64,000 nt of DNA from Marsupella aquatica (Eukaryota; Plantae; Marchantiophyta), in assembly GCA_973895155.1 (NCBI GenBank), contig OZ316899.1, forward strand, positions 1,821,573 through 1,885,572. The letters are read 5' to 3'. The notes below the pieces were generated by a model. It saw only the letters and a program-made list of their open reading frames with translations, was not told where the DNA came from and ran no database searches. Numbering within the stretch: the stretch's first letter is position 1; every line of letters begins with the position of its first letter. Positions 1 to 59,169 of the stretch are shown here, piece after piece. The position numbers and the translations under genes were made by a program.

Positions 1-4
1 GCGC

Positions 5-13139: not shown

Positions 13140-15451
13140 AAGGGTGGCTATGGAACCCGAGCCGAGGCCGGAAGTAAAAACGCCAGGGGAGGGAACACAA
13201 TCAGGGTTAGGGCGCGCTAAGTGCCGGCGGCTATAGGTAATTAATGGGAAGAAAGACCAATCAAGGAGGGGTAAGGATCGATCGCAAGGAATGGTGGCTC
13301 ATTTGCAAGCACAAACTAAGTAGACGACTACGGGAGGCCAACTACTGTCCGCTGCTCAGGCAAGCACTCGGGGTGGAAGTAGATACCGACAATCAACTCA
13401 AGAAGGGTATGAGCAACGTCACTCAAGCTGCTCATTTTTGGGGATGCCTGTTAGAACGAGCAACTGAGTACATTGGGACCTACGAGGACGAAGAATCGGA
13501 GAGAGCCGCTCGAGAACGGCAGGAGCTCGCTCGACTCTAAGTTCTGCAAAAGTCTACCTTCTTAGGAGGAGAACTCATCACGACTGAATTCCTGTGGACG
13601 CCTACTGCCGACAAACTGGACGATCTTCTGTTTTGTGAAGACAGAATAGTTGGCATCCGGGAAGCCATCAACCGCTGCAACGACATACACTGGGAGTTGA
13701 AGGGTAGCACGGAGGGGTGGACGAAGGCAACCGTGCTAGGAGAAACATCCACGGCAGCCGCTATGAAGAGAAAAGGGAACATCAATGAAGAGACCACCCC
13801 TACAAAGAGAACGAGGTTGGCGGCACCAAGGAAGCCAGCCGAGCAAGGGATCAGGAGGCAAGAAGAAGCCAAAGAAGAGGAGGTCAACCCCATCAATGTC
13901 GTTCCGACAAGAGATGACACCTGGAAAGGCTGGGCGGTGACCCTCCCCGAGGAAGTGCAATTACACTTTGCACGTGAAGAGGATGCATGCTTTACGGCTA
14001 TGCAGACTCAGAAGTAGCAAGGCTTCATGGCCGGATCTGGCTTGGAAGCCTTTGTGAAGTTACCATGGCTGAAGCCAGAGGTGCCGGATTCAGACTTATT
14101 AGAATTTTTGGGATCCTGGGAGCCCGAGTCCAATTCCACAAGGGTGTATGGGAAGGATTTCTATCTCACTCCCCGAGTAATTGCCGAAGCATTTGGCTTG
14201 CCGATGGGCAATAAGACCAAAGTTGATACGAGGAAGACCTTGCCTGACAAGGAGTTCCGATCGTTCTCAGGGCCATCAACGAGGAATGGCTTCTTCCGGA
14301 AGACCTGCACCAACCCGCACATTGGGGAGATGATCAATTTTCTTGCGGGTAACCATGCATTGCAACTTGTTGAGGCCAAAGATCGGCAAGGCACAGGTTT
14401 ACCTGGTGGAGAGGCCAGACCCCAGCCGGGACTACAACGGATACCTCCTCACCCAATTGAAGAAAATCTTGAAGGAGGAACAGCAGGTGATTGGCAAGGG
14501 AAGCGTGTCCCAGCTTGGCTATCATATGCCGCTGTTGTGCCGGTATGCCCGAAGTCAGATATTTGCCTTGGTACTTCCCCTGCAGGCAAGAGCACCAGAG
14601 GAGGTTCCAGAACAGAGGCCGGCAATAGAGAAACTGACCCAGTCTGATAGTCCTACAATCGAGCAGGTGTTTAGGCCGAGGAAGGAAGACTTGCCGATGC
14701 AGCAACCAGGCATGCAAAATCTGCTGAAATTGCTGGAGAAGGAAAGGAGAACGGCAACGGCAACGGCAACGGGACCGGTACAGAATACTGCTCCCGAAGT
14801 TGGCCTAAGCCAACTTACCAGGGAAAACCCCTTTACCGGGGCCAAGGAGAGAGGGAAGCCGGAACACGAGCCGGGAGTCCGAATGTATGTAGGAGCCTCA
14901 AGTCCCAAAGCCGAGGAAAAGCAGCCCGTAGCTCCTGGTCGCGATAGAGAGAAGAAGAGATCAACCTGGAAGCCGGAGGAGGAACCACAACCCGTGATCT
15001 GTGAGGCCATGTTCACGGCAAAACCAGGAGAGCAGCGGAGGGAGCCGGTAGTCCAAGCCGCGGAGGAAGCGGTAGAAGGCTACGACAATGATGACTCCAG
15101 CTACGGGTCGGACCATCATGTCCAGGAGTAAGGACCTGTGGCAGGTTCATCCCCACTCTTCCAAGAGTAGTTCAAGGGGACCCCACCCAGCAGAGCAGCC
15201 CCAAGTCTCCCCCACCAAATGTTGCGCCCCCGAGCTTTGACGGCATAAAATAGATGGCACAAGAGTTTGAGGAGCGACTCAGGGAGGAAGAGAGGGCAGC
15301 CCTGGCTAGGGAGAAAGATTTACCAGGGGGAGAATGGCCAGAGCACATCAGGCGGCTTGCAAAAAAACGAAGCAGCCCTCCAGCCACGATAGAAGAAATC
15401 CGCAAGGCGGCTTGGGAACAAAGGCCGCAATGGTTGATGCCAATGACTTTT
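13140..15451 (+). pseudogene. Family-B LTR-encoded accessory ORF, N-terminal and middle part (continues at 30964-31279 and 36844-37953)
   Basis: Stop- and frameshift-broken ORFs 13244-13540, 13697-14017, 14027-14647, 14343-15131 and 15254-15451 form one reading path that resumes after each insertion and ends ...EDQPPLP* at 37951-37953. Confidence 0.82.
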
Positions 15452-21353: not shown

Positions 21354-24300
21354 TTCCTCATCCGGAAAACAGTCGTCAATGCAATCTGTTGCTGGGTCAC
21401 CTGGTACTCTGGAAAAGAAATCAGCATTTGCGTGTAACTTTCCAGGTTTAATCCTTAATTCGTAATCAAATTCCTACAATAGAAGTATCCATCGGGCCAC
21501 TCGTCCTGTAAGATCCGGCTTATTTACTAAGTACTTCAAACTTTCATGATCTGTATGGAAGATCACACGGTACCCCAATAAGTAATGTCGAAACTTTTTA
21601 CATGAGTAAATGACCCCTAACGCCTCCCTCTCTGTAGTCGTGTAGTTCTGCTTGGCTACAGCTAAATGTCGGCTTGCAAAATAGATGGGGTGGTCCTTTC
21701 CCTTATTATCTAACTGACTTAGAATGGAGTCGATGCAGAACCCTGAAACATCTACAAACACATGAAAATCCTTATTCCAATCAGGTGCCATCATGACGGG
21801 TGCTTCAACCAACTTTTGCTTTAACTGTATCACAACCGTAACCCGTTCAGGTGTCGCTTCAAAATCTGAACCTGTTTTGAGCATGTTGGTTAACGGAAGT
21901 GCTAGCTTGGCAAAATCCTTGATAAACCTGCGATAGTAACCAATACAACCCAAGAAAGATCTGACATCTTTTATATTCTTGGGCTGCATGATATCGAGCC
22001 ACACGGCTAATTTTCCCTTATCAATTTTGATTCCCTTCTTGGATACCTTGTGTCCAAGCAGGACACCCTGAGTTACTCCAAAGAAACATTTATCTTGATG
22101 TAGCTTCAATCCCACCTGTCTGCATCTTTCAAAGGTTCTTCGTAAGTACTTGGCATGTTTGGACGCCTTCCCAAACACAGCAAAATCATCGATGAATATC
22201 TCCAGGAATTTCCTTAGGTAGTCGTGAAATATGTTAACCATCAACCTTTGGAACATAGCTGGCGCATTACACAATCCGAAAGGCATCCGGTTAAACACAT
22301 AAATTCCCCACTCCGTAATAAAAGCGGTTTTGATCTGGTCCTCTTGCCTGATTCTGATTTGATTATATCCAGAGTATCCATCCATGAAAGAATACAACTC
22401 ATGGCTAGCTATAGTGTCTAGCACCATATCAGTAAAAGGTAATGGAAAATGATCCTTCAAAGTGGCGTCATTTAACTTTCTGTAATCCTGGCACACCCTT
22501 ATCTTCGGCTTGCCATCCGGTCCTGCCTTCTTGGGTACAATGACAATAGGAGACACCTAGTCTGAATGGAGAACTGGTGTAATAAAGCCGACCTCCACCA
22601 ACTTGTCGATTTCTGCTTTTACCAACAAAGAATACTTTGGATTCATCCTCCTCATTGGTTGCCTAAATGATTTGACTCCCAACATAAGGTCAATCCGATG
22701 CTCCCCCAATTTTGGGTCCACTCCTTGTAAATCAAGGTGACTCCAAGCAAAAACATCCTGGTATTCCATAAGTAACTCACTGATTTCCTCTTCGATTTTG
22801 GGAGCAAGATCCCTACCCAGATTTACCTCCCGACCCTCTCCCAACTTGAGCTTCCTGTATTGCTTTGATTGAATCATGTTGATTTGCTTCTTTAGATTTG
22901 GATCTAGGTTTGCTTCCAACCTGTCCAACCTCATTCCTCCATATACTGGAATTTTGGGCTCCGTGGTTGCTTCTATCACCTCCGCTGTTGTCTCCCCACA
23001 GGAAGAAGTAGCTTCTTCAATGATGGTGTTGATTTCCACTAGAGTAGATCCGTTCGGTTTCGGCTTCCCTTCTAGCCTTAGCATTTTCAACCTCATTTTT
23101 TTAGTAGCCGGTCGATACCTTAGCTCACTCGGAACAATTGACTCCAAACATGCTTTATTTATTGTGACAGCAGGTACCTCTGATCGAATTGACTGCAACG
23201 CCTCCTGATTTGTCTGCGTAGCTGCCTGGTCTGCCGAGTGAGTCTTTGTAAGCGGAGTGACCTTTTCATCAACCAGCGCTGCCAACTCCGGCCACTGTGC
23301 CACAGCGCTTGATGAAAATCCACCATCTTGGCATTGGGATCCTTGGATAGAACAAGTTCCTCCACTTGGACCTGTGATTCGGCTTCTTTATCCATGATGA
23401 TGGATTCCAAAAAGGCGGCCTCAATTGCAAAGCAGTTGTCAGCCGAGACTTCCTGGCATTCTGAATCGCCTTCCTCTATGATAGGTTCCATGCGACTCTT
23501 CCTTGCTAACATTAGTGGGATTGAAATGGGCTCTTCCTCAATCTCCGGAATGATTGGCCGCATGGAATCTGTGTCTCCCTTCCAAAGTCCGCTGGGAGGT
23601 GTGTCAGGTCCAAACACACTCGCTTTTGATACCCCTGATAAGCATTCTAGCCAACGCACATCATTGGCAGATTCTAACCCAGTATCATAACCGTCTGCTT
23701 CACGAATCAACCTGGCTGCTTCATCCTCTACCTCCCATGACATGGTAATAGGTGGAGTTCTGAATGTAAACTATTTTGTGCCCCAGTTTTCCATAACTTT
23801 CGCAAGGTACAACCAGGGTCGTCCTATCAACACCCGAAATGAGGTAGGGTTCATCGGCTTCATCACAATGTAATTGATGCTGAATGCGATACCACCAATC
23901 TCCGTGCGTATTCCTTTAAGAATGCCAGTGGGAACTACCTGATAGCCATTGGCCATATTCAGCACCCTTCCTGTTAATTCTGGTTTGAATCCCCAAGCCG
24001 CCGCTGTTGAATCAATGAGTATGCATACCCCAGACCCTCCATCGATTGGTACATGCATAATCTTTTCTTTATTGATGATGACTGGTAAGCAAGGGGCTCC
24101 CCTATCCTCCTGAATCATCATGACATCCGTACGAGTGGCTACTCTAGGAAGCCTCGGCTTCCCAGCAATGACTTTTTTCAACTGCTTCCAAAAATATGGG
24201 CTATTTTTTAATAATTGACCCACAGTAGCCGTAACGCGTGATTCCAACACATCCTTTGCCAAGTTGTATGGCACCAGCTGTTTCTCTGTGTCATCCTCCT

Positions 24301-29500: not shown

Positions 29501-30963
29501 TGCAAAAGACTGGCTTCTTGCATATCGGCAAAGTAATTGCAGATGGTACCCTAGTCTGGATACTGCTCCCTCCCCAATGCTCTGCTTCTCTTTGTTTAAT
29601 GCCTTCTTCAACTACATTAAGAGATAGCCGTTGTAGTCCCGGCTTGCATCGATATTCTCCACCAAAAATACCTGGGCTTTGCCAATTTCTGCTCTCGGCA
29701 AGGTACAATGCAATGTGACTCTTAGGAAATCAATCAGCTGCCCTATATGTGGGTTGGTACATTGATTCCTAAAAAACCCATTCTTAGTGGAAGGCCCTAG
29801 AAATGACCTGAACTGGTCATCCGACAACGTCTTCCTCTGCTCCACCTTAGTCTTCCTTCCAATTGGTAGAGCGAACACGGCTTTGATAAGCGCAGGTGTT
29901 AGTTTGAACACCTTTCCATACAACAGCGTCGTGTTGGAAGAAGCCTCCCAGTATCCCACGAAGTCCAACAGATCCTCATCCGGTATGTCTACCATCCTCC
30001 AAGACAACCTGACAAAGCCCTCCAACCCAGTGTCATTTATATATCCTGCATATTTATTATCCTGAACGGCACTGAAGACCTCATCCTCATCTCTTGCGAA
30101 CTGTAATTGTAAATCGGCAGGTAACCTATCCGCCCACCCTGTCATGGTTTTATCCTCTACAGCCCGATCTCTAACTGGCCCGGATTCCATCTTGATTGGT
30201 CTCTCTGACCTAGTTCGCTTTGCTGGAGTTGCGGATGCCGAACTTCCCTTGCACTTCATCTCTTCAGCGCCTGAATACTCCCCAAGAATAGCTGCCTTCG
30301 TCCACTTTGCAGTGTGACCCTTTAATTCCCAAAGTGGCTCCCCTGCGTTCTTGATTGCCTCCCTGATCCCCACAACCTTATTCTCCCGAATCAGCAATTT
30401 GTCAAGCTCCGCACTGGTGGGTGTCCACGAGAACTTTTCCAATACCTCCTCCGTATCTACGAATGCCAATTTGTGAATTCCCCACAATCGCGCAAGCTCC
30501 GCTTGTTTTCTGGCTGCGCGCTCCGGCTCAACATCTTCATACGTAGGTATCAGCTGCCTTGCTTCTTCAAGAAAATAGCCCCAAAACTTCCCTGCCTGAT
30601 TCACCGTGTTCATTCCACCAAATGCCAAGAACTTGCGCAATTTCCCAAACCACCTCCCTCGATCGATCGGCAGCTGATTCCACCTCCCTAGGTTGATCAA
30701 ACAAGCAATTGCACAAGTGTACAGAGTGTCGGTCCCCTTCCTACAAAGCCGCCTCCTGATGGCTTACCTGATCAAGCCCCGATTAGGTCATAACCCTAAT
30801 CCTACTTAATCGCGACTGTTGGATCCGATCCTATCACAATCTCCCCCGGACACGTTGCAATCGGCTTCGATCCTTATTCCTCCCTTATTCTATCTACCTA
30901 ATCTTTATTTACCCATTATTTTAGGCTTAACTAAGTACTTCGTGATCCTGGCAAGGCATCACA
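26526..30963 (-). repeat. Family-A 5' LTR (4438 bp)
   Basis: Collinear with the 3' LTR apart from a ~180-bp deletion near 29443; ends CCACA before the PBS. Confidence 0.92.
27445..30790 (-). pseudogene. Family-A LTR-encoded accessory protein (5' LTR copy)
   Basis: ORFs 29612-30700, 28865-29242 and 27527-28858 duplicate those in the 3' LTR. Confidence 0.78.
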
Positions 30964-31279
30964 CTTCTACTCACTCCGCCTATGCTAAAGAAAGAGCCAT
31001 GGAGTACGGGGAGATGTGTGGGGAACTTGCGCTCAGCATCTTTGGGGAGGAGTTGGACGAGGGACCCTTTTCCAGAGGGAGATGTTGGAGAAGCGCCAAT
31101 TAGAAGAAGCGGTGGGTTTGGAGAGAAGCAAGAAGGACAAGGTCATCCGTCGGCTTAGGGCAAGGGAAGCCAAGGTAGAAGACTTGAAGGCGGCCAAGAA
31201 AGCCCAAGATGAGCTGCGGATTAAGCGGCATGAGCTAAACATCATGCAGGGGCAATTGGATACCGCGCAGTCTGATAAT

Positions 31280-36838: not shown

Positions 36839-38840
36839 ATAATCAGATTATCAAGGATAAACTGACTCGGACCCAGGAAGAGTTGGCCAATGCGATCAAG
36901 GAGAAGGAGAAGTGGAAGTGAGAGCTGAGAAACGCAGAGGAGGCCCACATAGCAGCCAGCAACCGGGCCATGGCGGAGACCCAAAGAAGGGAGAGGGCAT
37001 TGAAGGGGAAGCTCGAGGATATCCGCGGAGCCCTTGAGCAGAAGGAGACCGAGTTAGGGAAATTCTATCAGGCGATTGTGCTACGACAGGAGCTTGCATC
37101 CCTGACGGCCAGCTTCAAGGCCGACCTCCGTGAGAAAGACGACCAGCTCAACCAGACTTAGGCCAAGATGAATAAAATGGAGTTTGAGGTCATAACAGAG
37201 CTCGACAAGGAGCTAAGAGCAACCCGGGAGGAGAGGGCTACCTTAAAAAAGGAGCTAGAGGAAGCCCAGAGAGAGTTGGAGGAAGCCCAGAAGGAGCTGG
37301 AGGAGGCGCGTAAGGACCTGGACAAATTGCAGGAGGAGTTGAAGGAAAGCACATGGAAGATGGAGAACTTACAGCGGCGAGCCGACAACCAAATGGAGCG
37401 GCTGAAGAAACAGGCCGCAATATTTAAGTGCTTGGCTTCCTCAAGTCCCACTCCAATAGGGACAACCAAGTTGCCAGGAGTAGTACTGGCCAAAGGACAA
37501 GCCGAGACACTTGCACCGGTGCCGGAGGTAAGTGGCAAGGTGAAGGGGCCAAGCTGCCAAAATAGGGAAGAAGAAAAAGCAAAAACCTTTTGGGTCAGGG
37601 AGTAACACGGCTTCTCAAGCCATCGTGACCAAGGAGGTAAACCCGACACCAACCTCAAGCAGGGTCACGGTAGGGGATCCAACTGTCCTACAAGGCAGGG
37701 ATGGCAAGGGCAAAGCCTGAATGCTCAGTGATGAGGCCGGTGTACCGAATCCACCACTAGAGCAGGTCGGGGAAGCCGTAGCCATATCGGAGGCCGTGGC
37801 CGATGCTGAGGCCGAAGCCGAGGGGGGACCCAGTCAGGCTGATGGAGAGTTGACTCGGTCCATAGCAGGTAATCTGTCAGAGGACAGACCTACGGTAGTG
37901 GCTGCGGAGGAAGTGTTGGGGCGTCCATTGAGGATCAGCCACCACTACCATGACGGTGGTGGAGGGCCACTCCTTTTAAGGAGGGCAGACGTGGAGGGAG
38001 GAGGCGTGAGTGGGCAGGGCGGGCTCAGATCTCCAAGTTTAGAATTAGGATCAGGATCGGGAGGCGGCCCTGACACTTAGCTTAGTGGGATTGCGGATCC
38101 ACTGGTAAGAGCAACACTTGTGCTCCTGCCTCGCTGTACATAGGTAGATTATGGTCAGGTTAGATTAGGCTTACGCTGCAAGGAATTGGGTGGATCCACT
38201 GCCAGGATAAGTACCTGGGCAGCGGGGGGGTTCAGGGCCTTCTTCCTTAGCAAGTTTTTAGTGCACCAGTAGGGCTGGGATCAAGTAGTTAAAGAAGCTC
38301 TTGGTTAGTTATGATGTGTATATTCATGTTTCCTCATACCTAAGAGATGAATAGAGTTGGGCTCACGGCTTAGTTCGCAGATCTTGTGTATGAGAAGTAC
38401 TGTTTGTATGGCAAGTGCATGGTATAACTCAGTCAGAAGGAGTCATTTTGCTATTTGTGTGTCGCATTAACTTGTTTGAAGATTGCCCACATCAACCAAG
38501 AAGGGAGTAAGCAAGGTAGTAAGAGTTGGATGTGTCGAGCTGAGAGAGGTCTTAGCGGCTTACCCAAGCCAGTTGGGGATCATTCCGGCGGCGGAATCCA
38601 AACATACCTAAAGGAAGACCAGGAGAGGAGGACAAGGGAAGGCATAGAAGAGGCCGGCTACCTATCTCATGACCCTATGAAGGATCTGTCCAGTATATGT
38701 GTGTAAAATGTTAGTAGAAGGAAGTTAGCAGCGTTCCATGCCTCTAAGCCGCGAAACCGGCCTCGCCAAGAGCAAAACCTACGAGAATCGGCTTGTGCAG
38801 GGGGGTTTCTTGGGTTCAGGGAGCCAGGGGACGCACCACA

Positions 38841-45389: not shown

Positions 45390-46829
45390 GTATGCTCAAA
45401 GTCAGATCTTTGCCCCGGTACTTCCACTGCAGGCAAGGACCCCAGAGGAGGTTTTGGAACAGAGGCCGGCAACAGAGAAACCAAACCAGCCCGAAAGTCC
45501 TACAATCAAGCAGGTGTTTAGGCCGAGGACGGAGGACTTGCTGATGCAGCAACCAGGCATGCAGAATCTGCTGAAATTGCTGGAGAAGGAAAAGAGAACG
45601 GCAATGGCACAGGTACAAGACACTCCTTCAGAGGTCGGCCTAAGCCGACTCATGAAGGAAAACCCCTTTATCTGAGCCAAGGAAAGAAGGAGGCCGGAAC
45701 ATGAGCCGGGGGTTCGAATGTATGTAGGAGCCTCAAGTCCTGTAGCCGAGGGAAGGCAACCTAAGGCTCCTGTTTAGGAGAAACAGAGGGAAGAAGATAG
45801 GCTAAAAGCCAGAGGAGGAACTAGGACCTGCTAGCTATGATCGGCAGGAGGCCGTGTTCACGGCAAGACCAGGGGAGCAGCGGGGGGAGCCGGTAGTCCA
45901 AGCAGTGGAGGAGGCGGTGGAGGACTACGGCAATGATGACTCCAGCTACGGGTCGGACCATCATGTCCCAGGAATAAGGACCTGTGGCCATTTCATCCCC
46001 ACGCTTCCAAGAGTAGTTTGAGGGGACCCCACCCAGCAGAACAGCCCCGAGTCCCCCCCGCCAGATGTTGCTCCCCCGAGCTTTGACGACATAAAATATA
46101 CGGCACAAGAGTTGTAGGAGCGACTCAGGGAGGAAGAGAGGGTAGCCCTGGCTAGGGAGAAAGATTTACCAGGGGGAGAATGGCCAAAGGACATCAGGCG
46201 GCTTGTAGAAAAACAAAGCAGCCCTCCAACCATGATAGAAGAAATCCGCAAGGCGGCTTGGGAACAAAGGCCACGATGGTTGATGCCGATGACTTCTACT
46301 CACTCCACATATGCTAAAGAAAGAGCCATGGAGTACGGGGAGATGTGTGGAGAACTTGCGCTCAGCATCTTTGGGGAGGAGTTGGACCAGGGACCTTTTT
46401 TCCAGAGGGAGATGTTGGAAAAATGCCAATTAGAAGAAGCGGTGGCTTTGGAGAGAAGAAAGAAAGACAAGGTCATCCGTTGACTTAGGGCAAGGGAAGC
46501 CAAGGTGGAAGACCTGAAGGCAGCTAAGAAAGCCCAAGATGAGTTGCGGATTAAGCGGCATGAGCTAAACATCATGCAAGGGCAACTGGATACCGCTTAG
46601 TCTGATAATCAGATTATCAAGGATAAACTGACTTGGACCCAGGGGGAGTTGGCCGTTGCGGTCAAGGAAAGGGAGAAGTGGAAGCGGGAGCTGAGGGACG
46701 CAAAGAAGGCCCACATAGCAGCCAACAATCGGGCCATGGCGGAGACTAGGAGAAGGGAAAGGGCGTTGAAGGGGGAACTCGAGGATATCCGCGGAGCCCT
46801 TGAGCAGAAGGAGGCCGAGTTAGGGAAAT

Positions 46830-46874
46830 GGGTAATTGTAACGTGCAAGCAAACAATAGAATTTTTGCTTGCAC
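46830..46874 (+). repeat. MULE left terminal inverted repeat
   Basis: GGGTAATTGTAACGTGCAAGCAAACAATAGAATTTTTGCTTGCAC versus the reverse complement of the right end, GAGGTATTCTATTGTGCAAGCAAATAGGAGTTTTGCTAGCA; 18 of the first 24 nt match, including an 11-nt exact core. Confidence 0.8.
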
Positions 46875-47050
46875 AGGCAAGATTTCACCTTGTATTGGGC
46901 CCCAAAAAAGATGTGGAATCTTCCTCGCTAGCATGAAGACCCTGTTCAATCATTAAATAATGACACAAGAAATGCGTAACGATGAGTATTTTCTAGTCCC
47001 TTGAATGCACTAGATCCATTTCCGATCAGTTGAAATAACATTTTCTTCAG

Positions 47051-50000
47051 GCCAGCAAAATTGCTAGTCTAATGACGCCAACACATTGAGCCACTCACAC
47101 AAGGTAGGGCTCCACGTACAGGCTTCCACATGTGAAAATTCCCACCCGAGGAAGAGTAATAACAAAAAAGTACTACGTAATTCCCGCGTGACAAGAATCA
47201 ACGTGTCATTACTGTCTAGGAAAGGAGGATTAAGGCCGTTTGGACACTAATTAAGTCACTTGCAAGTGAACGGGACAATTACCGTTCGAACCAGAGGCAA
47301 ACCCAAGGCGGCGAACCGTCCACTTAAACAAAGCCAATCACCCAAAAACCACCAGTCTTCCAAAGCATTCTCCCGATCACTTCCACCGCGTCCAACTCAA
47401 GCTCTTTCATTCAGAACTGCTATCAGTGTTCCAAGTTCTCAACGCTCACCAGATCCAATTTAGGTAAGCGCGGTTCTATGGTTCTGAGCTATTTTCAGGG
47501 AATAACTCTCCGACAAGGCATGACATTCATCGTATTTCATCGTGAAAAGTGTTTCCATTTGTTGAATGTTGTTCTTCTTAATCACTGTTTGGGTTTCGTA
47601 AGTGCAGAGAAATGTCAGGGGTTCCAAGCAATCCTCCTCAAGGGAAATGGCAACTTGAGATCCGTCGTTACAACCCGGCGACGGATGGCCCTCTAGAAGA
47701 TGACTCTCCGCCGAAGCAGAAACCCAATGCAGAGACTGTGAAGGTCTCCGCAGATAGCAGTGTCCCAACCGCACTTGGTCAATCTGTTGGATCGTCATCA
47801 TCAGTGAGGAGAACACCGACTCCTCCAAAGTCAGGTCCAGCAAAGTCTTCACCAAAGCCGAAGGTGGATACCACACAGCGCAAGGCCGTATCGAAGAGGA
47901 AGAGGCTTGCAGAAGAGGAGCAATATTGGATTGATAGGGAGATCCATGACTAATGGACCGAGGAACGTCGCCTCTTTGGATTACGATTCTGAGTCAGACA
48001 CTGACTCCAATGCATGGAAGGCGGCCAGCCCCTGAGCGGAGAGTCAGGTTGTGGGTTTACTGAAAATTTTGTAGTTTCAAGCGAATGACATGTCCTCATG
48101 TACTTTCAATATGTATGAGAAGTAAAGTTTGTGTGTTCCTTTCCTTTCTCTGTGTTGCCCTTGAATGACATTTTGTCCATAGTACGTTTATTTGAGCCCC
48201 ACTTTCCTTGAATATATCGTTTATTTGGGAGACACAGATGGACCCTTCCCAGACTAGCGATATCGCTAGTATAGGACTGACTCTACATTTCAGATTAATC
48301 TTCGATGGGTTCATCTTAGATAATCAATTTGGCAGAGTATTACCTCAACAACTTGAGGGAACAATTCCCTCCCAAGAACACATCCTGTCACTGTATAGTA
48401 AACTTTATTGCTCATATTGCATCCTAAACTCCGTTGATCAGACTAGCAATCTCGCTAGCAAAAAACTGGCGTCATTTTGATGATCAAACCCTGAACTACA
48501 TACATCCTTGTCCATAGGTGAACACGGCTGGAAGTCGGACATTTCTGTCCGGATGTTGCAGACTTCCTAAGACTAGAGAGATCGCTAGCCATAAACAACG
48601 AACACAAACACCATATAATATAACATTATGGACCTTGCTAACATTATGGTTCACTCGGTGAAAACAGATTAATGTTTGTGAAACCACAAACTCGAGTAAT
48701 CCATCCCACTACCCTATAATTAGCATCTCCAATAAATGACTAGTCCCCTATCTATAATGGAATTAAACACCTCACTTCCCCAACAGTCAGAATCAGCTGT
48801 TTGACAAGGTCGTCCTTCTCCAGGTTGAGTGAAAACTTGTTTAAATACACCCACAATAGATGTTTACAAGACATGTATGGTTTCCCTCGTGTATGCCTCT
48901 TATAAAAGTCTTCACAAGAACACGAAGGGAAACAACAGATTTGCACCCAATATGTGTGCGGAACTTGTGAATCAGTCTTGTGAGTGGCGATCAAGTATCT
49001 CCAACCCCATCCATTTCCGGTAGTTACCTTCTCATTTCCAACAACTCTCATGTATTCTTGTGTAGCGGAAACGATGCGCTTGAGCAACTCTGGAGTATTG
49101 CTGAAACGCTGACGTGCACCCTTACCATTTTGGGTTTTCAACCGACGGTCCACATTAGTTAGATTGATTTGTTCGGGGAATGAGTTAACATCAATTCATA
49201 GGTTGACCCAATTGGGGGACGGGAACTCCCCAACTTGATTTGCATCCACATAGGACAATCCACTGATCTGGAATCCTAATCCCAACAGAAAATCTATCTC
49301 GGGATGGGAGAGGCAAGTCCCACGCTGAACCTTGAGCGACTCGGGTGGGGGGGGGTAGTTGAGCTAGAGTTCTGCGTCCTCGGCTCTTGTGACACTTATT
49401 GTTAGGACAGAGGTACAACAATTGGCAATGTGGAGATGATAATCGCAACCCGTGAATGGCGACTCCAACAATTCCCCCTTGGGCGGACTTACATCCAGTC
49501 TCCTTCATGAGATTTCTACATTCATCTCTTCCAAAAACGCTTTGATCAACCAACCCATTGCAAACAGGTCCAGCACCTCTACCGCTCCGCCTGAGATGCC
49601 AGGTCCCATAAGGAACATCAACCTCTCGGATGGAAGGGATCCTTTGGGGGGCATCCCGATGGTCATCCCCGACATCACACGAAGGTTGAGTCCCCATCTT
49701 CTCGGTATCATTGACATTACGACTTGCATCATCACCATCGTCATCTGAAATATGGATAACTCCAGCAAAGCAACCTCCGACAAGGGTTGCCAAAGTTGTA
49801 TTCTTTGCTATTTCTGGGTCCGCAAAAGTCTTTGAAACATTGACGAAGCGGAATTCAGGATAGAGATTACGCCTTTTTAGTCCTGAAGGAGAAGCTATTG
49901 TGCGTGACACTTTGTCATGTCTGTGGGAGTCATTCTCATGGATTGTAGTTGAAGCTTTCCCTTTCCTCTTTGTGGATGTTGTTCGGATATTGCCATGTAA

Positions 50001-53000
50001 TGGTACTGTTCTATAGAATTCATACTTAGCTGAAGACTCAAGCAAAAGATTTGCTGCCTTTTCGTAAGCATCCATGGATCCCATAGCATCGGCGTTCCTA
50101 TATGCTAATTCAAAAATGTCGGCCCCTGGCCTCTGTGAACACCTTTACTGTAGGCAGTTAAAAACAGGAATTTTCCCCGCAGCACAATTCTGGTCCACCT
50201 CACATGCTTCAATCAATCCCACTAGTTTCTTCATTTGGTAGGATCTCATGGATGCATGGACTGATTCCGCTCCAGTACAATTTGGCATCAAGGCTGACTC
50301 CATTGCGGTTTGTGTCTGCAAAAAAGTCCCCAGTCAAAAACGGACCTGATATGCTAGCGAGGTCACTAGCAAAAAACAATGACGTCAAAGAGAAAGGAAA
50401 TAGGACACTTACAACGCGGATGAAGTTCCCCCACTGCCTCCACCTCACGACCCACCAAGATATCCATCCTTGGAGAGATTTCAATTTCCCAGCATAGCAA
50501 TTTCCTTCCTTCCACCAACGATGGATTTCGTCAGCAACTCGGTATGCCTGAACATATGTTGGTGCTGTTCTCAGCCTTTCCCATAGTTTATAGTGCTCTC
50601 GATGATGATCTTCCCGAATACCCTCCAATGTGTGACGACGAAGAGATTGAGCAAAGTGAAAGGCGTCACCGTGCTCCTTCTCTGGGTGACGGACACCTCA
50701 AAAAAAACATTCCAAATGGCGATCCATCCAACCTTGGCATTATCGGCAATAAATCCTCCAATGAGTGGGTCATCCACGTCATGATCAGAGGCAACTTCAA
50801 TCATATATCTCCATGCAGTTTCAAGAGACAAGGAGTCCTCCGCACGGAGCTCACAAGTGAAGATGGTACAAAGGGACCTATAATTATGGTCGTACACATG
50901 GGCGCTGAATGTCAGCCACCCAGTGCTTATTCTCCGCATTACATCAGAACTGACCCATGCTCCTTCCAGCTCACCTCCACTCCTCATCTGCCTGAGAATA
51001 TCAACACCAGAACTGGGCCATTGGTACTCATTTTGAAGACATGAGCCCTATCGGTCTTGCTCCCCTGGCTAGGGAAAAGGCACCTCTGAACGTAAGGAAA
51101 ATTATTCCGGGCTTGCATCTCACGAAGAGAATCCAACTCACCTTTTTTTGGGTTATCCATTTTCACGCTCCGGAATATGGCCTGGAATTTCTCAATAGTG
51201 GACACAACCTTCATCGATTCCCAAATCTCTCTCCCTTCTTCTTTCGATAGTTTTGAAGAAGACTCTGGATGCAAAAGAGAAACCAGGTTTCCTATAGACT
51301 TGTTAAGAACATGCCCTGGCGTACACACGGGATTCGCTTTATGAACACCAGAAACTATCTCCTTCGCCTGCTTTTTTGCCAATTGAGATTTCCCTTTCCA
51401 AACAACGTGGTCATGGAAACCCATGTGAACAGCCAATCAAGACATATGTTTTGCAACATTTGACTCAAGAGACGGCTTAGGATAGACGTACAAAAGTTTA
51501 GCCAGACATTCACGGATGCAGAGAGGCCTCTCCTCACAGAATCCGCACACCAACCCTCCTTCCTCCACAAGCTCACCAAGATGAAACGGCTCAGTAAATT
51601 GTCCCTTTCCTTGGAAGGAAGAATCGTTTTTTGAACCGGTGTGCTTCAACTTTCTACAGACCAGATTTTGACATTCAAGTACACTGGCACATCTGGCTTT
51701 TGACACAGACCAGTGGTTGCGAGGTTTGAGATTAGCTGAAGTTGTGAGAAGTCTCGTCCATGGGTAGCCGTCATTATCCCTATCCATGTCCTAAAGACCA
51801 TATCCTCGACAAAATTGACCTTCGACTGGAGGAAGCTCAAAAACGCAGTTCCTGTTGTATGAAGAGTCTGCACTTGAATCTCCTTCCAATTGTTTCCCCT
51901 CCGGAAATTTGCCAACTCGCTTGACCCAGTAATATTGAGGAAGGCATCATATGCACTAACTCAATAAAGAACTGGCTGAGATTGAAACTTGTTTTGACTC
52001 ACTGCTTCAAAAACGGCTTTCTCAAAAGACTTCGTCGACACAGAAGAGAGATCCCAACCCACACTCTCAAAGGAGATGTCGATAATTTTGGGTACTGCAG
52101 GTGACGGGCGAGTTGGCGATTCTGGATCTGAAACATTGATATGTGCAATGTCATCCTTACATGAGACTAGCTCTACAGCTGAACCACACTTCAGGTCCCA
52201 AGCTCTCTCTGGCAATATTCCTGAACCATTATCCGGCACCTCATGACTTCTGGATCCATTCTGAGAGTAAAGAAGGAACAATTTCCAGATGAAATCATCT
52301 TTCAAAAGCCCAAACCTCGATGAGAGGAAAGACTCCTTGATAGAGATAATATTATTCTTCAAAACATCCAGAACAACAACATCACCCGTCTTCTTTCTCT
52401 CGATCACAACCTTCGATCCCAAAGAAGGCATGCTGACAGTTTTGGACATTACAGTCTACAACAATCCTCAAATGTGAGATACTTCGCTCTCTTCTTTCTC
52501 CAAATACATATGAGGAAACGTGCTTGTGTAGGTGTTGGACTCAACGTATTTATTTAATAAATGCCTCTTATTCCCGTTATCTGACCATTATATTGTCTTA
52601 TATGAAACTATTTATGGAATGATAAAGCTAGCAAGATTGCTAGCTCAATCAACCATGTAAAATGGCTCAAAAACATACTAAACAACCTTCACAAGTTCAT
52701 GGATTTAGTGACCATTTTTGGCTAGCGATGTCGCTAGCAAAAATAGTTTCTCGTAAGTGACCATTATGACCGTTTATATCCATTGGAATTGGTCAACGGG
52801 TACCTATATTGTCAATGGTACGGTACCTTTGTCATTAGCTACTTTTATTTCAGTCGTGAGTTAGGTTGTTCGTATTTCAGGAAGTACATGTATACTTGAT
52901 GGTGTCTGCAAAATGATTGCAAGGAGAGTCGTATAGAATATCTGTATCTCTTTTCACGACCGGGCGCTGCATTCAGGTGAAAGCAACAGATGAGGGTACG

Positions 53001-56000
53001 ATTCTATCTTTGACTGGAAGATCGATTCTCGGGGTTCTTTACGTTTGCAAAGCGTGTCGCCCTCGACCTTGACCTGTTCATACCCTTATCACTTCACGGA
53101 CCCCCTGATGGAGCCATTGTCTTCACCCGAGAGCTTGTCATCAATAGGATCGTTCAAGTCAGTCGAGTCAAGCCGAAGGGAGACAAGGTCTACAGTGAAC
53201 AAGAAGGCGCTCCAGGCGGGATTGAAAACACCGAGGAGGCCCAAGATGGTGAACCAAGTAGATGTTGTGAATCCTACGTTTCAACCTGGAGCTTTAGAAC
53301 CCTATTCTGTTGTCATCAATCACCATCTTTTCCCTTTTGGAAATGACAAATTTGGATTCCCCCTCGCTCCTCCGAGGATTCCCCTTTGCAGAATGCAAAA
53401 CATGCAAATCGTTTGGTCCTTGCAAACAATCTTGACTGCGATCGAGACACTCAAGAATGAATTCTGGACGGAGGGATACATCGAGGATGCACCTCGATTT
53501 TACGTACAAATGACCGGCAAAGATGGCCATGTCCAGATGTGCGACGATGGAATTCGGGAGTGGTGGGATGACATGTGGATTCTTTAGAATGAAGAATTTG
53601 AGAGGGAATGTGATTCTCACAAAGCTTTCAAAATTTTGAAAGACAAAATGTTCTGTGTTTTTGATGGAAATAATCATCTCTACTCATGGATGCAGCTTGC
53701 GGACGAGAATCCACATGATGCCAAATATCATCCTCGAGTTGTTTGCCAAATTTTCAAGGGTGACAAGAACTCATTCGTGCAGATTGAGTCGGCGATGCAT
53801 GCGTTGAATAGGTTTGTTTCTTTTCCTTCAAGCAGTGAATTGTATATAAAATTCTATCAGTTCCTCTTGTTAGCAATCTCGCTGACCTGTTTCTTTGGTT
53901 CGGGTTGACTCAATGTCACGTTGAGAATTCTTGGGTCCTTGAAGCAGAGAGAGTCCAGAAGGTGCTCAGCAATGACCTTTCTGTATACAAAGATATCATC
54001 GATGCAGACAACTACAAACTTTTCCAGCAAAAGATGGCAAATATCAGGAAACCGGCTTGATATTCGAAGAACATGACACTCGACGCCTGCACATACATTC
54101 TGTCTGCTGCTAATATTGCAGCGCAGACGGAAGATTTGAAGAAGAAGTTCTAGTTGAAAGAAGCGCAAGGAGAACCTCTTTCAAAAGCTGCGCAAGACAT
54201 GGCTATGAAAGACATGATGAAGGAGCAACTAGCAGATTGGAATGTGAAGGTGCCAAAGATTGGACCTCTCCTGAATCCTGAGTTTGGTGACTTTTTCCAG
54301 AAGTGTGTTGAGATGCACAACTACTGCAAACATGAGAGGAAGGAGGCCCAACGAACAGATAATAAAGGAAGGGGTAATGTGTCACGTGGTCTCGATTGTG
54401 CGAGGCTATTTACGGGTGTCTCTTCGTTGACTCCGCAGCTCAGATGTGTACTACTCGAGGCACAATGCAGACCTGAGCTTTGCAAGAAGTACTTCCACCC
54501 TGGTCAATTCTCGGACAGCGAAACAAAACTTTGGCTTCACCGATGGGCTGTATGGGAGCAGGTCGAGTCAATTTGTTCTTTGCTCATGTCTGAGATTATT
54601 TCAGAGTTGATCCCAATTGTTCCAGATGCAAGGATCCTTACTTCGTCTGAGAAGACAAAGCCATCGCTGATCCTTGACATAGAGGAGGACTTTGAAGATT
54701 TCCAAACGAGAGTGAAATCTCATTTTTTCAAACAGATATGGCCACCAAAGTTGGGTGAGAAGATTGACATCTCACTTTTTTGGAGGAGGGCAAAGAGATA
54801 TACGTATCATTTTTTTGTGGATAGAGAAGTTGCTGACAAAACATATTGGTGGTCCTATCCTGCTTGCTTCTCGCCTTGGATAGCAGGAGTGAAAGAGGAT
54901 CTAACCTCCGTTAAATATGGAGAGTACTCGATGTACCCATGTGAGGGAGTGGAGGCTCCAAGGAAGATGAGTGAGTGGGAAGTCCTTCACTGTCCATGGT
55001 ATTTAGAATCAGACAAATGGGCAGTGACATTTGACACAGCAGAGAAGGCAGCCTTTCATATGATAAATCAAGGCTTGATACCAGAGTCGTACATTACAGA
55101 GTCCAAATTAGCTCCTACAGAAGCCGAGGCTGGCGGATGTGAGGCAATGGAGAAAGCTGTTCTTGGTGTAGCTGCCATTGTCGACCGGAGTAGATCGAGG
55201 AGACCTCGGAAGGTGCCGGTGAAGGACGCATCCAAAGATGGATCAGTCTTGTCTGGGAAGCAAAGTAAGTCTCTTTCTCCCCTTTTTTTCATACCTCAGT
55301 CGGAGTAATTTTGTCTCAGTCACCTGTCTGACATTAACATGTTTTTCAGAGAAGAGAAAGGTTGCAGCCTCTGGGAGTTTGAAGAGTGGGGCGGATGATG
55401 GAGAAGAACCCAAGTCTCCTGATGTTAAGGTCACAACAAAATCTGTTGTGGACCTGGGTTCAATCAAGCGTTTAAAGAGGAAGTGTCATGTCCAAATTCT
55501 CTCCGACTCGGATGAGGAGGAAGCATGCGTCGCTCAAGGAGTAGCACGAATGTGTGGTCTTAAGAAGGACGGTGAGAGGCATTTCTTGGCAAAGAGCAAT
55601 CTCATGGAAACTGCAAACTCAATTAGCCAGAGGAAAGTAAGATCTCCCTAGATGGGCAATGCGGATCAGTGGTTGTCTGGAATGAGCAAATCAAGCGAAC
55701 ATCCAAACCCAGTGATGATCAACGGAAAACATTATGCTGGAATTGGTGCTCACTTGGGTTTCATATTCCTTCCCACGGGTCATCGAACGAGTGTCACAGA
55801 CCGGGAGGTCCCGGAGTGGAATGTTTGGAGTGAGAAATTACCATATTATTTCTTTGGAGTCATGCGTCCGATGCTTGCCGACGATGGTTATGTCGTAGTT
55901 CTTCACAGCTCTGACTATAACCATATGAGGCAAAAAAATTCTGCTGTCGAGCAGAATAACAAATTTAAACATGTCCGACAATATTTGGTTTTGCTTTCAT

Positions 56001-56084
56001 CTCCTTTGTATCAGGCAAATATGGACATCGAGGTAAGATGTCCTCAATATTTTTCGTGCAATTTTTGCTAGCGAGCTCGCTAAC
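47051..56084. repeat. Dispersed 18-bp palindrome RCTAGCRA-NN-TYGCTAGY, 9 copies within the MULE
   Basis: Copies start at 47051, 48253, 48442, 48572, 50353, 52627, 52721, 53869 and 56067; all lie in subterminal, intergenic or intron sequence. Confidence 0.85.
48752..52449 (-). pseudogene. MULE-family transposase: GCM/WRKY-like Zn domain, DDE core, C-terminal SWIM finger; one intron at 50316-50412; several stops and frameshifts
   Basis: Cys/His pattern C..VLECQN..C...LVCGFC...C..EC...HMGFHDH. Core WVSSDVMRR..GWLTFSAHVYD, GFIADN. After splicing the GTAAGT...TGCAG intron, MPNCTGAESVHASM (catalytic Glu motif). SWIM CSCEDF...SCKHLLWVY. Confidence 0.82.
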
Positions 56085-56653
56085 CAAAAGTACCCATTTC
56101 TGACATATTCTCGTTTTCAATTCAGGTAGTTACTCTCATAATGGATGTCTTCTGCAAGGTGGAATTCTGGGCAAAAGTCCCAAAACATACAGGATATGTT
56201 CCAATGACTTCCTCGAAGGATGCCCGCCATAAATTGATGTTGAGTGTTTGCTACCCAAAAACTGATCTTAGCCCCAGGGCGGCTTTTGCAGGTTCCAATA
56301 GATTGTCAGTTAGGTTCATGCAAGCCGTAATGGAGATCCTTACTTTGCCAAAGGACATTGTCATTGATTGGACTGTTGGAGATGGAAGTGCTTTTGCCGC
56401 TGGGGAATACGCTGGGAGATTTGTTGTGGGTGTTGAAGATAGAGACATTCTTCATCTGTGTGCGCAAAACACTTTGGCAAATGTGTTGGATAGACACGCC
56501 CAAAAGTTGAAAGGGGCCGCAGACCCGAAGAACGATGATCCCAATGATGAAGGATCGGATGATGAGTTCACCATCCCAGGAGATGATCAGGGAGGACCTT
56601 CAGACGAGAAGGATGAATCCGACCTGGAGCAAAGCACTTGGCCTTTGATGTAG
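53108..56653 (+). pseudogene. MULE cargo gene (~1,100 codons, 4 exons): ParB-like N-terminal motif plus C-terminal beta-class N4/N6 DNA-methyltransferase-like domain
   Basis: Introns 53812-53903 (acceptor mutated to CGG), 55265-55349 and 56033-56125 join the ORFs in frame. VFDGNNHLYSW resembles the ParB/Srx DGxHR motif. EILTLPKDIVIDWTVGDGSAFAAGEYAGRFVVGVED resembles the MTase motif X-I-II block. In-frame stops at 53585, ~54050, 54151 and 55649. Confidence 0.65.
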
Positions 56654-57363
56654 AATTCCCTATTTGGTGTTTTTCTTTTATTTGTAGAATTTTTGGATGT
56701 GTAGTATTGATCCGATGCTGGTGATTTCTTCAATAATAGGCGTTCGGATTGGTTTTTGGAGGAGAGATTTCGTCTTCAGAAAGAAATCGAGGATCATTTT
56801 CTTGTGACCCCTGAGAAGGGATTTGCGCTTCCTTGCTATGCTGAAAAGACTGCAAAGGAGGTTGATGAAGTGCCCGTCATTTTGACTTGGGAGGGGAAAG
56901 GTCTGCGGTCAGTGAGGGGTGCTCGGAAAGCCCTTTACTGCCCTCAGTTCATAGATGATGAGGCTGGGACTGTAGCACAATATGTTGACAATTCGGCTGA
57001 GGAGACTGATAGGGAGTCGAGTAGCAATCCTAGTAATTCCTCAGATGATTTGGAATCAGAGGATTCTCAATGACTCATGGTCAATTTCAGATGCAATCTC
57101 ATTCCAGAAGATATTTGTCATACCAAAGCTTTATTAAAGATGGATTGTGAAAGGTTTTTTGACCTGGTTTTGTTGATAGTGATGATGCCTTTTCATTCAG
57201 TTCAGTGTAGTGAAGATCTTGATTTTTTTGTTTGTGAATATTTAAGTATCTGCATTTCCCTTTTTTGATACTGTTTCACAGTATATATCGACAATCTTAC
57301 TTGGGAATCTGCCTTAACTACCCTAAAGTTAGGCACAAACTTGCCTCGCTAGCCTGCTGTCCT

Positions 57364-57404
57364 TGCTAGCAAAACTCCTATTTGCTTGCACAATAGAATA
57401 CCTC
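57364..57404 (-). repeat. MULE right terminal inverted repeat
   Basis: Its reverse complement aligns with 46830-46874; abuts the TSD at 57405. Confidence 0.8.
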
Positions 57405-59169
57405 TAGGGAAATCCTATCAAGGGATTATTGTGCTGCAGCAGGAGCTTACATCCCTGACGGCCAACTTCAAGGCCGACCTGCGTAAGAAAGACGACCAGC
57501 TGGATCAGACTTATGCCAATATGAATAAAATGGAGTCTAAGGTTGCAGCGGAGCTCGACAAGGAGCGAAGAGCAACCCAGGAGGAGAGGGCTACCTTAAA
57601 GAAGGAATTGGAGGAAGCCTAGAAGGAGCTGGAGGAGGCGTGCAAGGACCTGGACAAAGTGCAGGAGGAGTTGGAGGAAAGCACGAGGAAGATGGAAAAC
57701 TTACAACGGCGAGCCGACAACCAAACGGAGCGGCTAAAGAAACAAGCCGCAATATTTAAGTGCTTGGCTTCATCAAGTCCAATTGGGGCAACCAAGTTGC
57801 CAGGAGTAGTACTGGCCGAAGGACAAGCCGCGACACTCACACCGGTGCCGGAGATAAGTGGCAAGGGGAAGGGACCAGCTGCCAAAATAGGGAAGAAGAA
57901 GAAGCAGAAACCTTCTGGGTCAGGGAGTAATGTGGCTTCTCAAGCCGTTGTGACAGAGGAGGTACAACTGGTGCCAACCTCAGGCAGGATCACGGTAGAT
58001 CCACCCCTAGAAGGCGGGGATGGTAAGGCCAAGGCCGGAACAATCAGTGATGAAGTTGGGGTATCGGATCCTCCACTAGAGCATGTCGGGGAGGCCGTAG
58101 CCGTATTAGAGGCCATGGCCGATGCTGAGACCGAAGCCGAGGGTGGACCCAATCAGGCCGATGGAGAGTTGACTCGGTCCGGGGCAGGTAATCTGTCAGA
58201 GGACGGACCTATGGCAGTGGCTGCTGAAGAAGCATTGGGGGCGTCCATTGAGGATCAGCCACCGCTACCATGATGGTGGTGGAGGGCCGCTCCTTTTAAG
58301 GAGGGCGGACGTGGAGGGAGGAGGCGTGAGTGGGCAGGGTGGGCTCAGATCTCCAAGTTTAGAATTAGGATCAAGACCAGGAGGCGGCCCTGACACTTAG
58401 ATTAGTGGGATTGCGGATCCACTGGTAAGAGCAACACTTATGCTCCTGCCTCGCTGTACATAGGTAGATTACAATTAGGTAGATTAGGCTTATGCTGCAA
58501 AGAATTAGGCGGGTCCACTGCTAGGATAAGTACCTGGGCTGCGGGGAGTTCAGGGCCTTCTTCTTTAGCAAGTTTTTAGTGCACCATCAGGGTTGGGATC
58601 AGGTAGTAAAAGAAGCTCTCGGTTAGTTATACTGTGACCCTTGTGTATATTCACGTTTCCTCATGCCTAAGAGATGAATAGAGTTGGCCTCACGGCTTAG
58701 TTCGCAGATCTTGTGTATGAGAAGTACTGTTTGTATGGCAAGTGCATGGTATAACTCAGTCAGAATGAGTCATTTTGCTATTTGTGTGTCGCATTAACTT
58801 GTTTGAAGATTGCCCACATCAACCAAGAGAAGGGAGTAAGCAAGGTAGTAAGAGTTGGATGTGTCGAGCTGAGAGAGGTCTTAGCAGCTTACCCAAGCCA
58901 GTTGGGGATCATTCCGGCGGCGGAATCCAAACATACCTAAAGGAAGACCAAGAGAGGAGACCAAGGGAAGACATAGAAGAGGCCGGCTACGTATCTCATG
59001 ACCCAATGAAGGATCTGTCCAGTATATGTGTGTAAAATGTTAGTAGAAGGAGGTTAGCAGCGTCCCATGCCGCTAAGCCGCAAAACCGACCTTGCCAAGG
59101 GCGAAACCTACGGGAATCGGCTTGTGCAAGGGGGTTTCTTGGGTTTAGGGAGCCATGGGACGCACCACA

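Follow-up and report, generated by a model that had tools for sequence, protein, structure and literature searches.

A liverwort family of two-gene Mutator-like elements with a methyltransferase-like accessory protein and lineage-specific palindromes

Can a plant DNA transposon carry, beside its transposase, a second protein that recognizes the element's own DNA? Known transposon systems that recognize their own DNA so as to escape or tune host silencing are few, and the main ones (VANC, TnpA and, recently, the AtMu1 transposase) are all from flowering plants. The question is raised here by a stretch of 64,000 nucleotides from the liverwort Marsupella aquatica (GCA_973895155.1, contig OZ316899.1, positions 1,821,573 to 1,885,572; hereafter the window), in which an earlier note, made from the sequence alone, had singled out a candidate Mutator-like element (MULE) at positions 46830-57404 of the window. 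We find that this interval is a DNA-transposon copy, now decayed, of a family that pairs a transposase gene with an accessory ("cargo") gene, and that each lineage of the family examined carries its own set of palindromes. The best explanation, which we put forward with about even confidence, is a two-gene MULE family with palindromes, whose accessory protein is a putative palindrome reader acting on the element.

The insertion itself is plain. The interval is flanked exactly by a 9-bp target-site duplication (TSD), TAGGGAAAT, with its left copy at 46821-46829 and its right copy at 57405-57413, and it ends in imperfect terminal inverted repeats (TIRs) of ~45 bp (46830-46875 on the plus strand and 57360-57404 on the minus strand), which read GGGTAATTGTAACGTGCAAGCAAAC... 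and GAGGTATTCTATTGTGCAAGCAAAT... when the left end is aligned with the reverse complement of the right. Both termini begin with G(G/A)G and have GTGCAAGCAAA in common; repeat search and end alignment also place an internal inverted pair, GTGCAAGCAAA...TTTGCTTGCAC, in the left TIR. Joined with one copy of the TSD, the flanks align without gaps to a paralogous host sequence at ~36839-37781, and this uninterrupted host copy, 84-89% identical, contains a single TAGGGAAAT at 37055-37063, which is therefore the empty site. The insertion splits a coiled-coil open reading frame (ORF), and by hand translation the same joining restores the frame. What the earlier note had described as a TSD- and TIR-bounded element is a bona fide DNA-transposon insertion with a 9-bp TSD and an empty site, and the coordinates given in that note are exact. 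The interrupted host ORF (46200-46829 and 57414-58100) is part of a repeated unit, copies of which are 81-93% identical and recur in the window at 36839-37781, 30963-31279, 15355-15449 and 5438-5649; this host DNA is itself likely to be a transposable element, in which the MULE would be nested.

Two divergent, intron-containing genes lie within these bounds, and the spacer between their start codons, a probable promoter at 52450-53107, measures 658 bp, in agreement with the ~650 bp given by the earlier note. On the minus strand is a MULE-like transposase pseudogene (48755-52449; homology to relatives spans 52422-48755), made up of a Cys/His finger region at the N-terminus, a predicted DDE core at ~51859-50390 and a putative SWIM finger exon at 49153-48755. 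Scored against the uninterrupted 511-codon ORF of a Riccia copy (locus L004; the relatives are cited below by such locus numbers), it has at least two frameshifts (~51015 and ~50660-50706) and several in-frame stops, for example at 51437-39.

To which superfamily does this transposase belong? The Pfam MULE DDE domain (PF10551) gave no match on the window pieces, the Riccia ORFs or ten long homologues, and the sole Pfam trace on the transposase is ZSWIM1-3_RNaseH-like (E = 0.18). The nearest language-model clusters are MULE/ZSWIM1-3, with scores of 0.82-0.88 and nine of the ten best in one clan; the signatures FD(I/V)TW, GFMAD..AGWIA and NAAES.H follow one another in the expected order, as judged by eye; and a CxCx(n)CxH motif lies C-terminal of the catalytic core, at 48752-49153 in the window and 3987-4481 in L004. 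Pfam SWIM reaches E = 0.11 at best, on P0133, and several members bear the name "SWIM-type domain-containing" in UniRef. The relatives have TSDs of 9-10 bp (TTGATCCGG in L004, GTGAAATTT(A) in L003); L004 ends in a perfect 22-nt TIR core, L003 is bounded by a related TIR, and the two cores are conserved at 80-84%. On the strength of the 9-10-bp TSDs, the TIRs, the putative SWIM finger with the signatures read by eye, and the language-model neighbours, we assign the element, as a divergent lineage, to the Mutator (MULE-like) superfamily. Its named transposase homologues are from liverworts only, and the rest lie on unnamed contigs.

The cargo gene occupies the plus strand (53108-57073; homology to relatives 53144-57070) and is also a pseudogene. 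Its five exon blocks, at ~53108-53811, 53874-55264, 55350-56032, 56126-~56650 and ~56740-57073, have GT-AG boundaries, with intron positions set by homology and splice consensus only. The DGN(H/N) motif falls at 53666-53677, the helical middle domain in exon 2 and the methyltransferase (MTase)-like domain in exons 3-4, with FLPT at the motif IV position (~55760) and DWTVGDGSA as motif I (~56345). The reading frame is broken by stops at 53585-87, ~54058-60, 54151-53 and 55649-51. Contigs from four public runs, in whose samples the family is highly repeated, have sense codons at three of these four (54060 A>G, 54151 T>C, 55650 A>G), so that three of the four stops are private to the window copy. 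When 52400-57404 is compared with the contigs of these runs (X1-X4), transitions dominate, A>G and T>C at ~40-50 each and C>T and G>A at ~21-30 each. With four stops in the cargo and with frameshifts and stops in the transposase, the window copy is pseudogenized, as had been claimed for it: it is inactive, a dead member of an autonomous two-gene family.

Is the partnership of the two genes peculiar to this dead copy? A search with the 384-residue cargo exon against 1.84 billion representative proteins defines a cargo family of 94 clusters at 50% identity. The members that bear a name come from two liverworts only, Riccia sorocarpa and Calypogeia fissa, and are labelled "hypothetical"; Riccia has dozens of paralogous copies, and all matches are unannotated, transposable-element-like and multi-copy. 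Six loci, belonging to no fewer than three species, have the divergent transposase/cargo pair: the window, Riccia L003, L004, L008 and L009, and Calypogeia L007. In L003 and L004 the window's transposase pieces match collinearly, on the opposite strand and upstream of the cargo gene, and in L008 and L009 the divergent arrangement is present in the annotation. For Calypogeia L007 no TIR could be defined, the 22-nt inverted match at 976 / 15832 not being terminus-like. The ratio of nonsynonymous to synonymous substitution rates (dN/dS) in the large cargo exon is 0.14-0.30 between L003 and L010 by three methods. Between L003 and L004, dN is 0.25-0.44 with dS saturated, and at the DNA level the coding blocks alone can be aligned; L003 and L008 are uninformative for selection, their identity being 97% in the coding and in the non-coding parts. 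Judged from these substitution patterns, the cargo gene is under purifying selection. Recurrence of the pair and constraint on the cargo had both been named in the earlier note as checks on its proposal, and both came out in its favour. A one-off capture of a host gene, as in a Pack-MULE, is therefore scarcely conceivable as the origin of the cargo: we found nothing in its favour, and the six-locus pairing, the Riccia paralogues and a dN/dS in this range contradict it and led us to rule it out. Literature searches returned no description of this two-gene liverwort family, which is apparently undescribed; a preprint of 2026 that deals with transfers between plants and fungi has no bearing on it.

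Other features of these loci deserve mention. A third small annotated gene (149-207 residues, plus strand) lies between the left TIR and the 3' end of the transposase in L003 (2755-3876), L004 (1576-2626) and L008 (1852-2696); the L003 and L004 copies are 41% identical over 121 codons (tblastx), and no counterpart was found in the window at 46830-48750. In L010, a long terminal repeat (LTR) retrotransposon (positions 1-9513; RVT_1, RNase H and integrase) lies directly upstream of the cargo, at the place expected for the transposase. L012 (Calypogeia fissa) and L006 represent another subfamily of the transposase, whose identity to P0125 is 55-66%, with the palindromes CTCGGAGAGnCTCTCCGAG / CTCGGCGAnnnTCGCCGAG.

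What kind of protein is the cargo? At ~1,100-1,200 residues it comprises a DGNHR-motif domain, an all-helical domain of ~380 residues, a low-complexity linker and, by prediction, a beta-class MTase fold. Pfam gave sub-threshold matches only on all window ORF pieces. On P0099, P0097, P0100 and exon 4 of L001, N6_N4_Mtase (PF01555) scored 23.7-26.2 bits against a cut-off of 26.7, covering the last 50-60 residues of the MTase domain, and P0107 has a precomputed PF01555 match. The C-terminal 328 residues of P0099, from Riccia sorocarpa, were modelled with AlphaFold2 from a 17-row family alignment (predicted local distance difference test, pLDDT, ~80 in the core and 58 on average). By Foldseek, this model matches PDB structures at E = 1e-11 to 1e-6 with probability 1.0 and a template-modelling (TM) score by target of up to 0.75, among them CcrM, M1.HpyAVI, M.RsrI, M.BceJIV, M.PvuII and the rotifer N4CMT (8s9m/n/o); its matches among AFDB clusters are DNA methylases only; and the family profile finds M1.HpyAVI (4.6e-7) and CcrM (2e-6) among PDB sequences. 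The modelled C-terminus thus has the fold of beta-class N6-adenine/N4-cytosine DNA MTases, with the motifs in permuted order, motif IV first and motif I last.

The two motifs have fared differently. The S-adenosylmethionine (AdoMet)-binding motif I (GDIVIDFAGGWGAT...VAE in Riccia, GDIFLDCNIGVGNT...GME in L001, KDIVIDWTVGDGSA...GVE in the window) and the acidic residue after strand 2 are kept in all lineages, and to judge from these residues the domain probably binds AdoMet. At the motif IV position, which is anchored by alignment with CcrM and by a W conserved ~15 residues downstream, Riccia has DLPT or DMPS, L001 SLPN, the window FLPT and Calypogeia SVGT, and the canonical (D/N/S)PP(Y/F/W) does not occur. 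Because the catalytic motif is replaced, methyl transfer is doubtful, and by comparison with active enzymes the domain is probably not a canonical methyltransferase; METTL14, a degenerate MTase, offers an analogy for a non-catalytic domain of this kind. The cargo is thus an example of a DNA-MTase fold that has lost its catalytic loop and is still under selection.

The N-terminal half is less readily placed. In a model of P0099 residues 150-720 (38-row alignment), the helical domain of ~380 residues is confident (pLDDT 85-95) and the first 180 residues are poor (pLDDT 35-80). No credible fold match to this model came from Foldseek against the PDB, a wide VIA search (Z at most 6.1), AFDB clusters (E at least 0.46) or the Atlas shape search (TM at most 0.24), and an ESM Atlas search with the 384-residue exon returned noise (HEPN-like, 0.72). 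The signature loop, FSTWDGNHRLITW in Riccia, is conserved as FSVLDGNHRLFSW in L001, whereas the window has FCVFDGNNHLYSW, decayed to DGNNH; at this place the model shows a strand and then a helix. The loop resembles the DG(Q/H)(H/Q)R loop found in domains of the ParB/Srx superfamily, DGQHR/DndB and DUF262 among them. Of the ParB/Srx profiles, the best match is that of one member to DGQHR_dnd_1 (E = 0.23), and three of the 30 best AFDB matches, non-significant at E~1, are DUF262, ParB/Srx and DGQHR proteins. By language-model features, the N-terminal domain (P0099 165-345, equivalent to window 53240-53809) lies nearest to DUF3723 (0.96; 183 of 256 features) and to ParB_N (0.92), and the DUF3723 cluster that ranks first has a model similar to ParB-N domains. 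The same features also place the domain near an unnamed cnidarian cluster. A ParB/Srx-like N-terminus is thus probable but unproven, and weakly supported. Where the earlier note had spoken of a ParB/DNA-methyltransferase-like gene, the MTase half is borne out by Foldseek, AFDB and profile matches; the ParB half gained no significant support from sequence or fold, and draws on the DGNHR motif, the language-model likeness and the matches at E~1.

The palindromes are the third component of the system. The window version, GCTAGCGA-NN-TCGCTAGC (consensus GCTAGCGANNTCGCTAGC), occurs in the 64 kb at seven sites with at most 3 mismatches, against 0.12 expected, and none of these, nor any of the eight exact half-sites, falls outside the element; at up to 4 mismatches there are nine sites, at the positions previously reported. 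From the left end, an exact half-site TCGCTAGC lies 95 nt inside the element (46925-46932), followed in the left subterminal region by a weak palindrome with 4 mismatches, GCCAGCAAAATTGCTAGT (47051-47068). Three palindromes (48253-70, 48442-59 and 48572-89, together spanning 48253-48589) lie downstream of the transposase 3' end, and one, GCTAGCGAGGTCACTAGC (50353-50370), in a putative transposase intron just beyond the DDE-core exon, the end of which is taken from the L004 alignment. Two are intergenic, within 52450-53107, at 52627-44 and 52721-38, the latter perfect. A doubtful one with 4 mismatches falls across the intron 1/exon 2 boundary (53869-53886), and GCTAGCGAGCTCGCTAAC (56067-56084) sits at the centre of the 93-nt intron 3 (56033-56125). 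Half-sites TCGCTAGC (57346) and TTGCTAGCAA (57363) mark the right subterminal region (57346-57372). The earlier count of nine palindromes confined to non-coding DNA accordingly stands as a count at up to 4 mismatches, and the confinement fails at the site that straddles intron 1 and exon 2.

Each lineage examined has its own abundant palindrome of 16-19 bp, in 7 to ~30 copies per element. L001 has TTGTTAACGG-NN-CCGTTAGCAA at five sites (upstream, in intron 2, twice in intron 3 and downstream), its intron 3, homologous to window intron 3, thus holding two palindromes of its own type; L005 has ACTAACGA-YR-TCGTTAGT (20 in 7.2 kb), Calypogeia L007 G(C/T)TAGCGAGCTCGCTA(G/A)C (~23-25), L006 CTCGGCGA-NNN-TCGCCGAG (~8), L003 TCC(A/G)GCG(G/A)-N3-...GGA (20 or more), and L004 CCGGCGGA-N-TCCGCCGG (at least 21, some of them in an intergenic tandem array of 95-bp period). 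Common to all variants are dyad symmetry and a core, RCGR-N(2-3)-YCGY, in which two CpGs keep their places. The sites are spread over introns, the divergent promoter and the subterminal region of either end, and the flanks, searched over 9-53 kb, have none. Coding DNA contains fewer of them than expected, by a binomial test and even under an over-generous coding mask: one of 23 in L007 (P = 2e-7), none of 21 in L004 (P = 1.4e-7) and three of 20 in L003 (P = 1e-4). The dedicated palindrome set proposed in the earlier note is upheld, with a separate variant for each lineage at similar non-coding positions. The L004 array, between the two genes at 8542-9113, repeats TCCGGCGGACCTCGCCGGC every ~95 bp and resembles the motif gain of VANDAL21. 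Outside its element, L004 also has tandem palindromes of other kinds, TACTTAGGTACTAAGTA (4 copies) and TCGATAA...TTATCGA (4 copies), at 21863-22001 and 22277-22420, and other repeats of the window contain an unrelated palindrome family (CATTCCGGCGGCGGAATC / TATTCCGCCCCCGGAATG; 8657, 38581, 58910; 15670, 26744).

What might read these palindromes? From the conserved dyad with lineage-varying outer bases we infer a dimeric, co-evolving reader, such that the palindromes would be candidate binding sites for a dimer of a protein encoded by the element. We favour the accessory protein, which would bind or load at the palindromes, because the layout matches that of VANC21 on VANDAL21 of Arabidopsis, where the family-specific motifs to which VANC21 binds are found within introns and in the non-coding DNA between genes and at the termini, and evolve by tandem repetition (Hosaka et al. 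2017, PMC5735166). Such a reader may act on the element's chromatin or transcription as VANC or TnpA does, by anti-silencing, self-activation or joining-up of the ends, and its MTase-like domain would then be a DNA- or AdoMet-binding module rather than an active enzyme. Several points tell against the accessory protein in this role. Tying the palindromes to it rather than to the transposase is a preference argued by analogy; no HTH_ParB or other DNA-binding domain was recognized in the cargo by Pfam and fold searches, and nothing significant for a ParB-like domain emerged from Pfam, NCBIfam, PADLOC or PDB-profile searches; the four public runs, with DNA-like assemblies of thousands of short contigs, yielded no consistent GT-AG joints and no support for expression or splicing; and L006, L011 and L012 have transposase and palindromes with no detectable cargo within the available (short) flanks, although L011 at least looks truncated, its second end being absent within 10 kb. 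These three loci may speak for the transposase itself as the reader, an explanation that we regard as possible but less probable, in which a dimer of its N-terminal Cys/His (WRKY/FAR1-type) finger would bind the palindromes for synapsis and promoter auto-regulation, and the accessory protein would be otherwise employed (chromatin, DNA-end processing, target choice). In Riccia each of the two subterminal regions holds the sites as inverted arrays, in the classic location of transposase sites, and subterminal repeats are established as transposase-binding sites for Ac, En/Spm and Mutator. Moreover, the window palindrome flank TTTGCTAGC resembles the TIR core TTTGCTTGC, and the MULE transposase AtMu1c is reported to bind its cognate motifs, relieve silencing and activate copies by itself (bioRxiv 10.64898/2026.08.24.746577). 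Against this, the TIR cores are unlike the palindromes and are kept between L003 and L004 while the palindromes change; numerous sites are intronic or in the promoter, at a distance from the ends, where the VANC pattern fits better than recognition of the ends; and a copy without cargo may be served in trans.

The earlier note had also suggested that the protein modifies the element's own motifs. An active N4-cytosine or N6-adenine MTase, marking the palindromes or the element against silencing by host 5-methylcytosine, would suit the beta-class fold, the conserved motif I and the two CpGs at fixed positions in every palindrome variant, and liverworts do use a bacterial-type N4-cytosine MTase, MpDN4MT1 of Marchantia, on CG sites (bioRxiv 10.1101/2021.02.12.428880). 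That enzyme retains TSPPY, however, whereas the motif IV position of the cargo lacks both the second proline and the aromatic residue and is not conserved in the family, and an 18-19-bp dyad far exceeds a typical MTase target. As far as can be read from the sequence, self-methylation is improbable, and because of the degenerate motif IV it ranks as the least likely of the three readings, behind the accessory protein and the transposase as readers. Still less credit is due to the idea that the palindromes have no protein partner and are by-products of tandem expansion, DNA or RNA hairpins or sources of small RNAs: some sites do lie in tandem arrays, such as that of 95-bp period in L004, but the dyad and the RCGR core persist, with varying outer bases, though the proteins are 25-45% identical; isolated copies lie in the homologous introns of the window and L001; and an 8-bp stem with a 2-nt loop would form no stable hairpin. 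Returning to the accessory protein as reader, one may extend it to a bolder conjecture, which we think rather unlikely: that liverwort MULEs, and maybe other superfamilies, carry a eukaryotic loading system of ParB/parS type, in which a ParB/Srx-like protein with a dead MTase domain dimerizes on CpG palindromes, coats or marks the element and shields it from CG methylation, with arms-race co-evolution and an N-terminus that may share ancestry with DUF3723 of Starship elements. If true, it would reveal a widespread, unrecognized class of transposon self-recognition proteins.

The family bears on several wider matters. An unannotated protein family with no Pfam domain, conserved together with a transposase in two liverwort classes, would be a second, independent case of self-recognition, and 7-30 palindromes per element that vary by lineage and keep their symmetry and CpG core look like the footprint of a co-evolving protein-DNA recognition pair. 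Marchantia, a model plant among the liverworts, employs a related MTase of bacterial type for N4-methylcytosine. For the annotation of bryophyte genomes, the multi-copy "genes" of the cargo family should be masked.

How does the system compare with those already described? To our knowledge, the combination of a MULE-like transposase, a DGNHR/helical/pseudo-MTase protein and co-evolving CpG palindromes is undescribed; its conceptual relatives include, besides the systems compared below, retrotransposon-borne DNMTs and KDZ-linked TET/JBP genes. Bacterial and phage fusions of ParB-N and N6_N4 methylase domains (PF02195 and PF01555) have a domain order that the cargo, with its probable ParB/Srx-like N-terminus ahead of a beta-class amino-MTase, would share; among solved folds, the bacterial CcrM, M1.HpyAVI and RsrI come closest to the cargo, and one AFDB match is a ParB/Srx-annotated MTase protein; the cargo differs in its helical insert of ~380 residues, long disordered linker, spliceosomal introns and degenerate motif IV, and has no ParB domain detectable by hidden Markov models (HMMs). 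Its palindromes are like parS in size and symmetry only, and the ParB helix-turn-helix domain that reads the 16-bp parS was not found in the cargo. MpDN4MT1 and the rotifer N4CMT have the same beta-class fold, and the former comes from a liverwort as well, but they are host genes that keep (T)SPPY, whereas the cargo is a multi-copy transposon gene without that motif. DUF3723, a conserved auxiliary gene of the fungal Starship elements (PMC9156397), provides the nearest language-model clusters to the cargo N-terminus, and each is an unexplained accessory gene in DNA transposons that carry cargo. There is no HMM-level similarity, Starships use a tyrosine recombinase rather than a DDE transposase, and DUF3723 has no MTase domain; the likeness counts as no more than a lead.

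Comparable too are TnpA of En/Spm (CACTA), with its subterminal 12-bp motifs, and AtMu1c, in which a sequence-specific binder encoded by the element uses repeated subterminal sites and regulates the promoter and methylation state of that element. TnpA is derived from the DNA-binding domain of a transposase, whereas the candidate here is the transposase itself or an MTase-like protein of other ancestry. Another close system is VANDAL21 with VANC21, from which the present family departs in having a motif that is a dyad 16-19-mer with CpGs, rather than a 9-mer in direct arrays, in its liverwort host, in binding and hypomethylation that are here putative, and, as far as domains and Pfam tell, in a cargo that joins a DGNHR domain and a helical domain to a beta-class MTase fold and matches no Pfam family. 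The two nevertheless have much in common: both belong to the Mutator superfamily and encode an accessory protein next to their transposase, in either case related families have different motifs, which tandem repetition spreads, and, as in VANC systems, the lineage-specific palindromes of the liverwort elements are concentrated in introns, in the DNA between genes and in non-coding terminal stretches.

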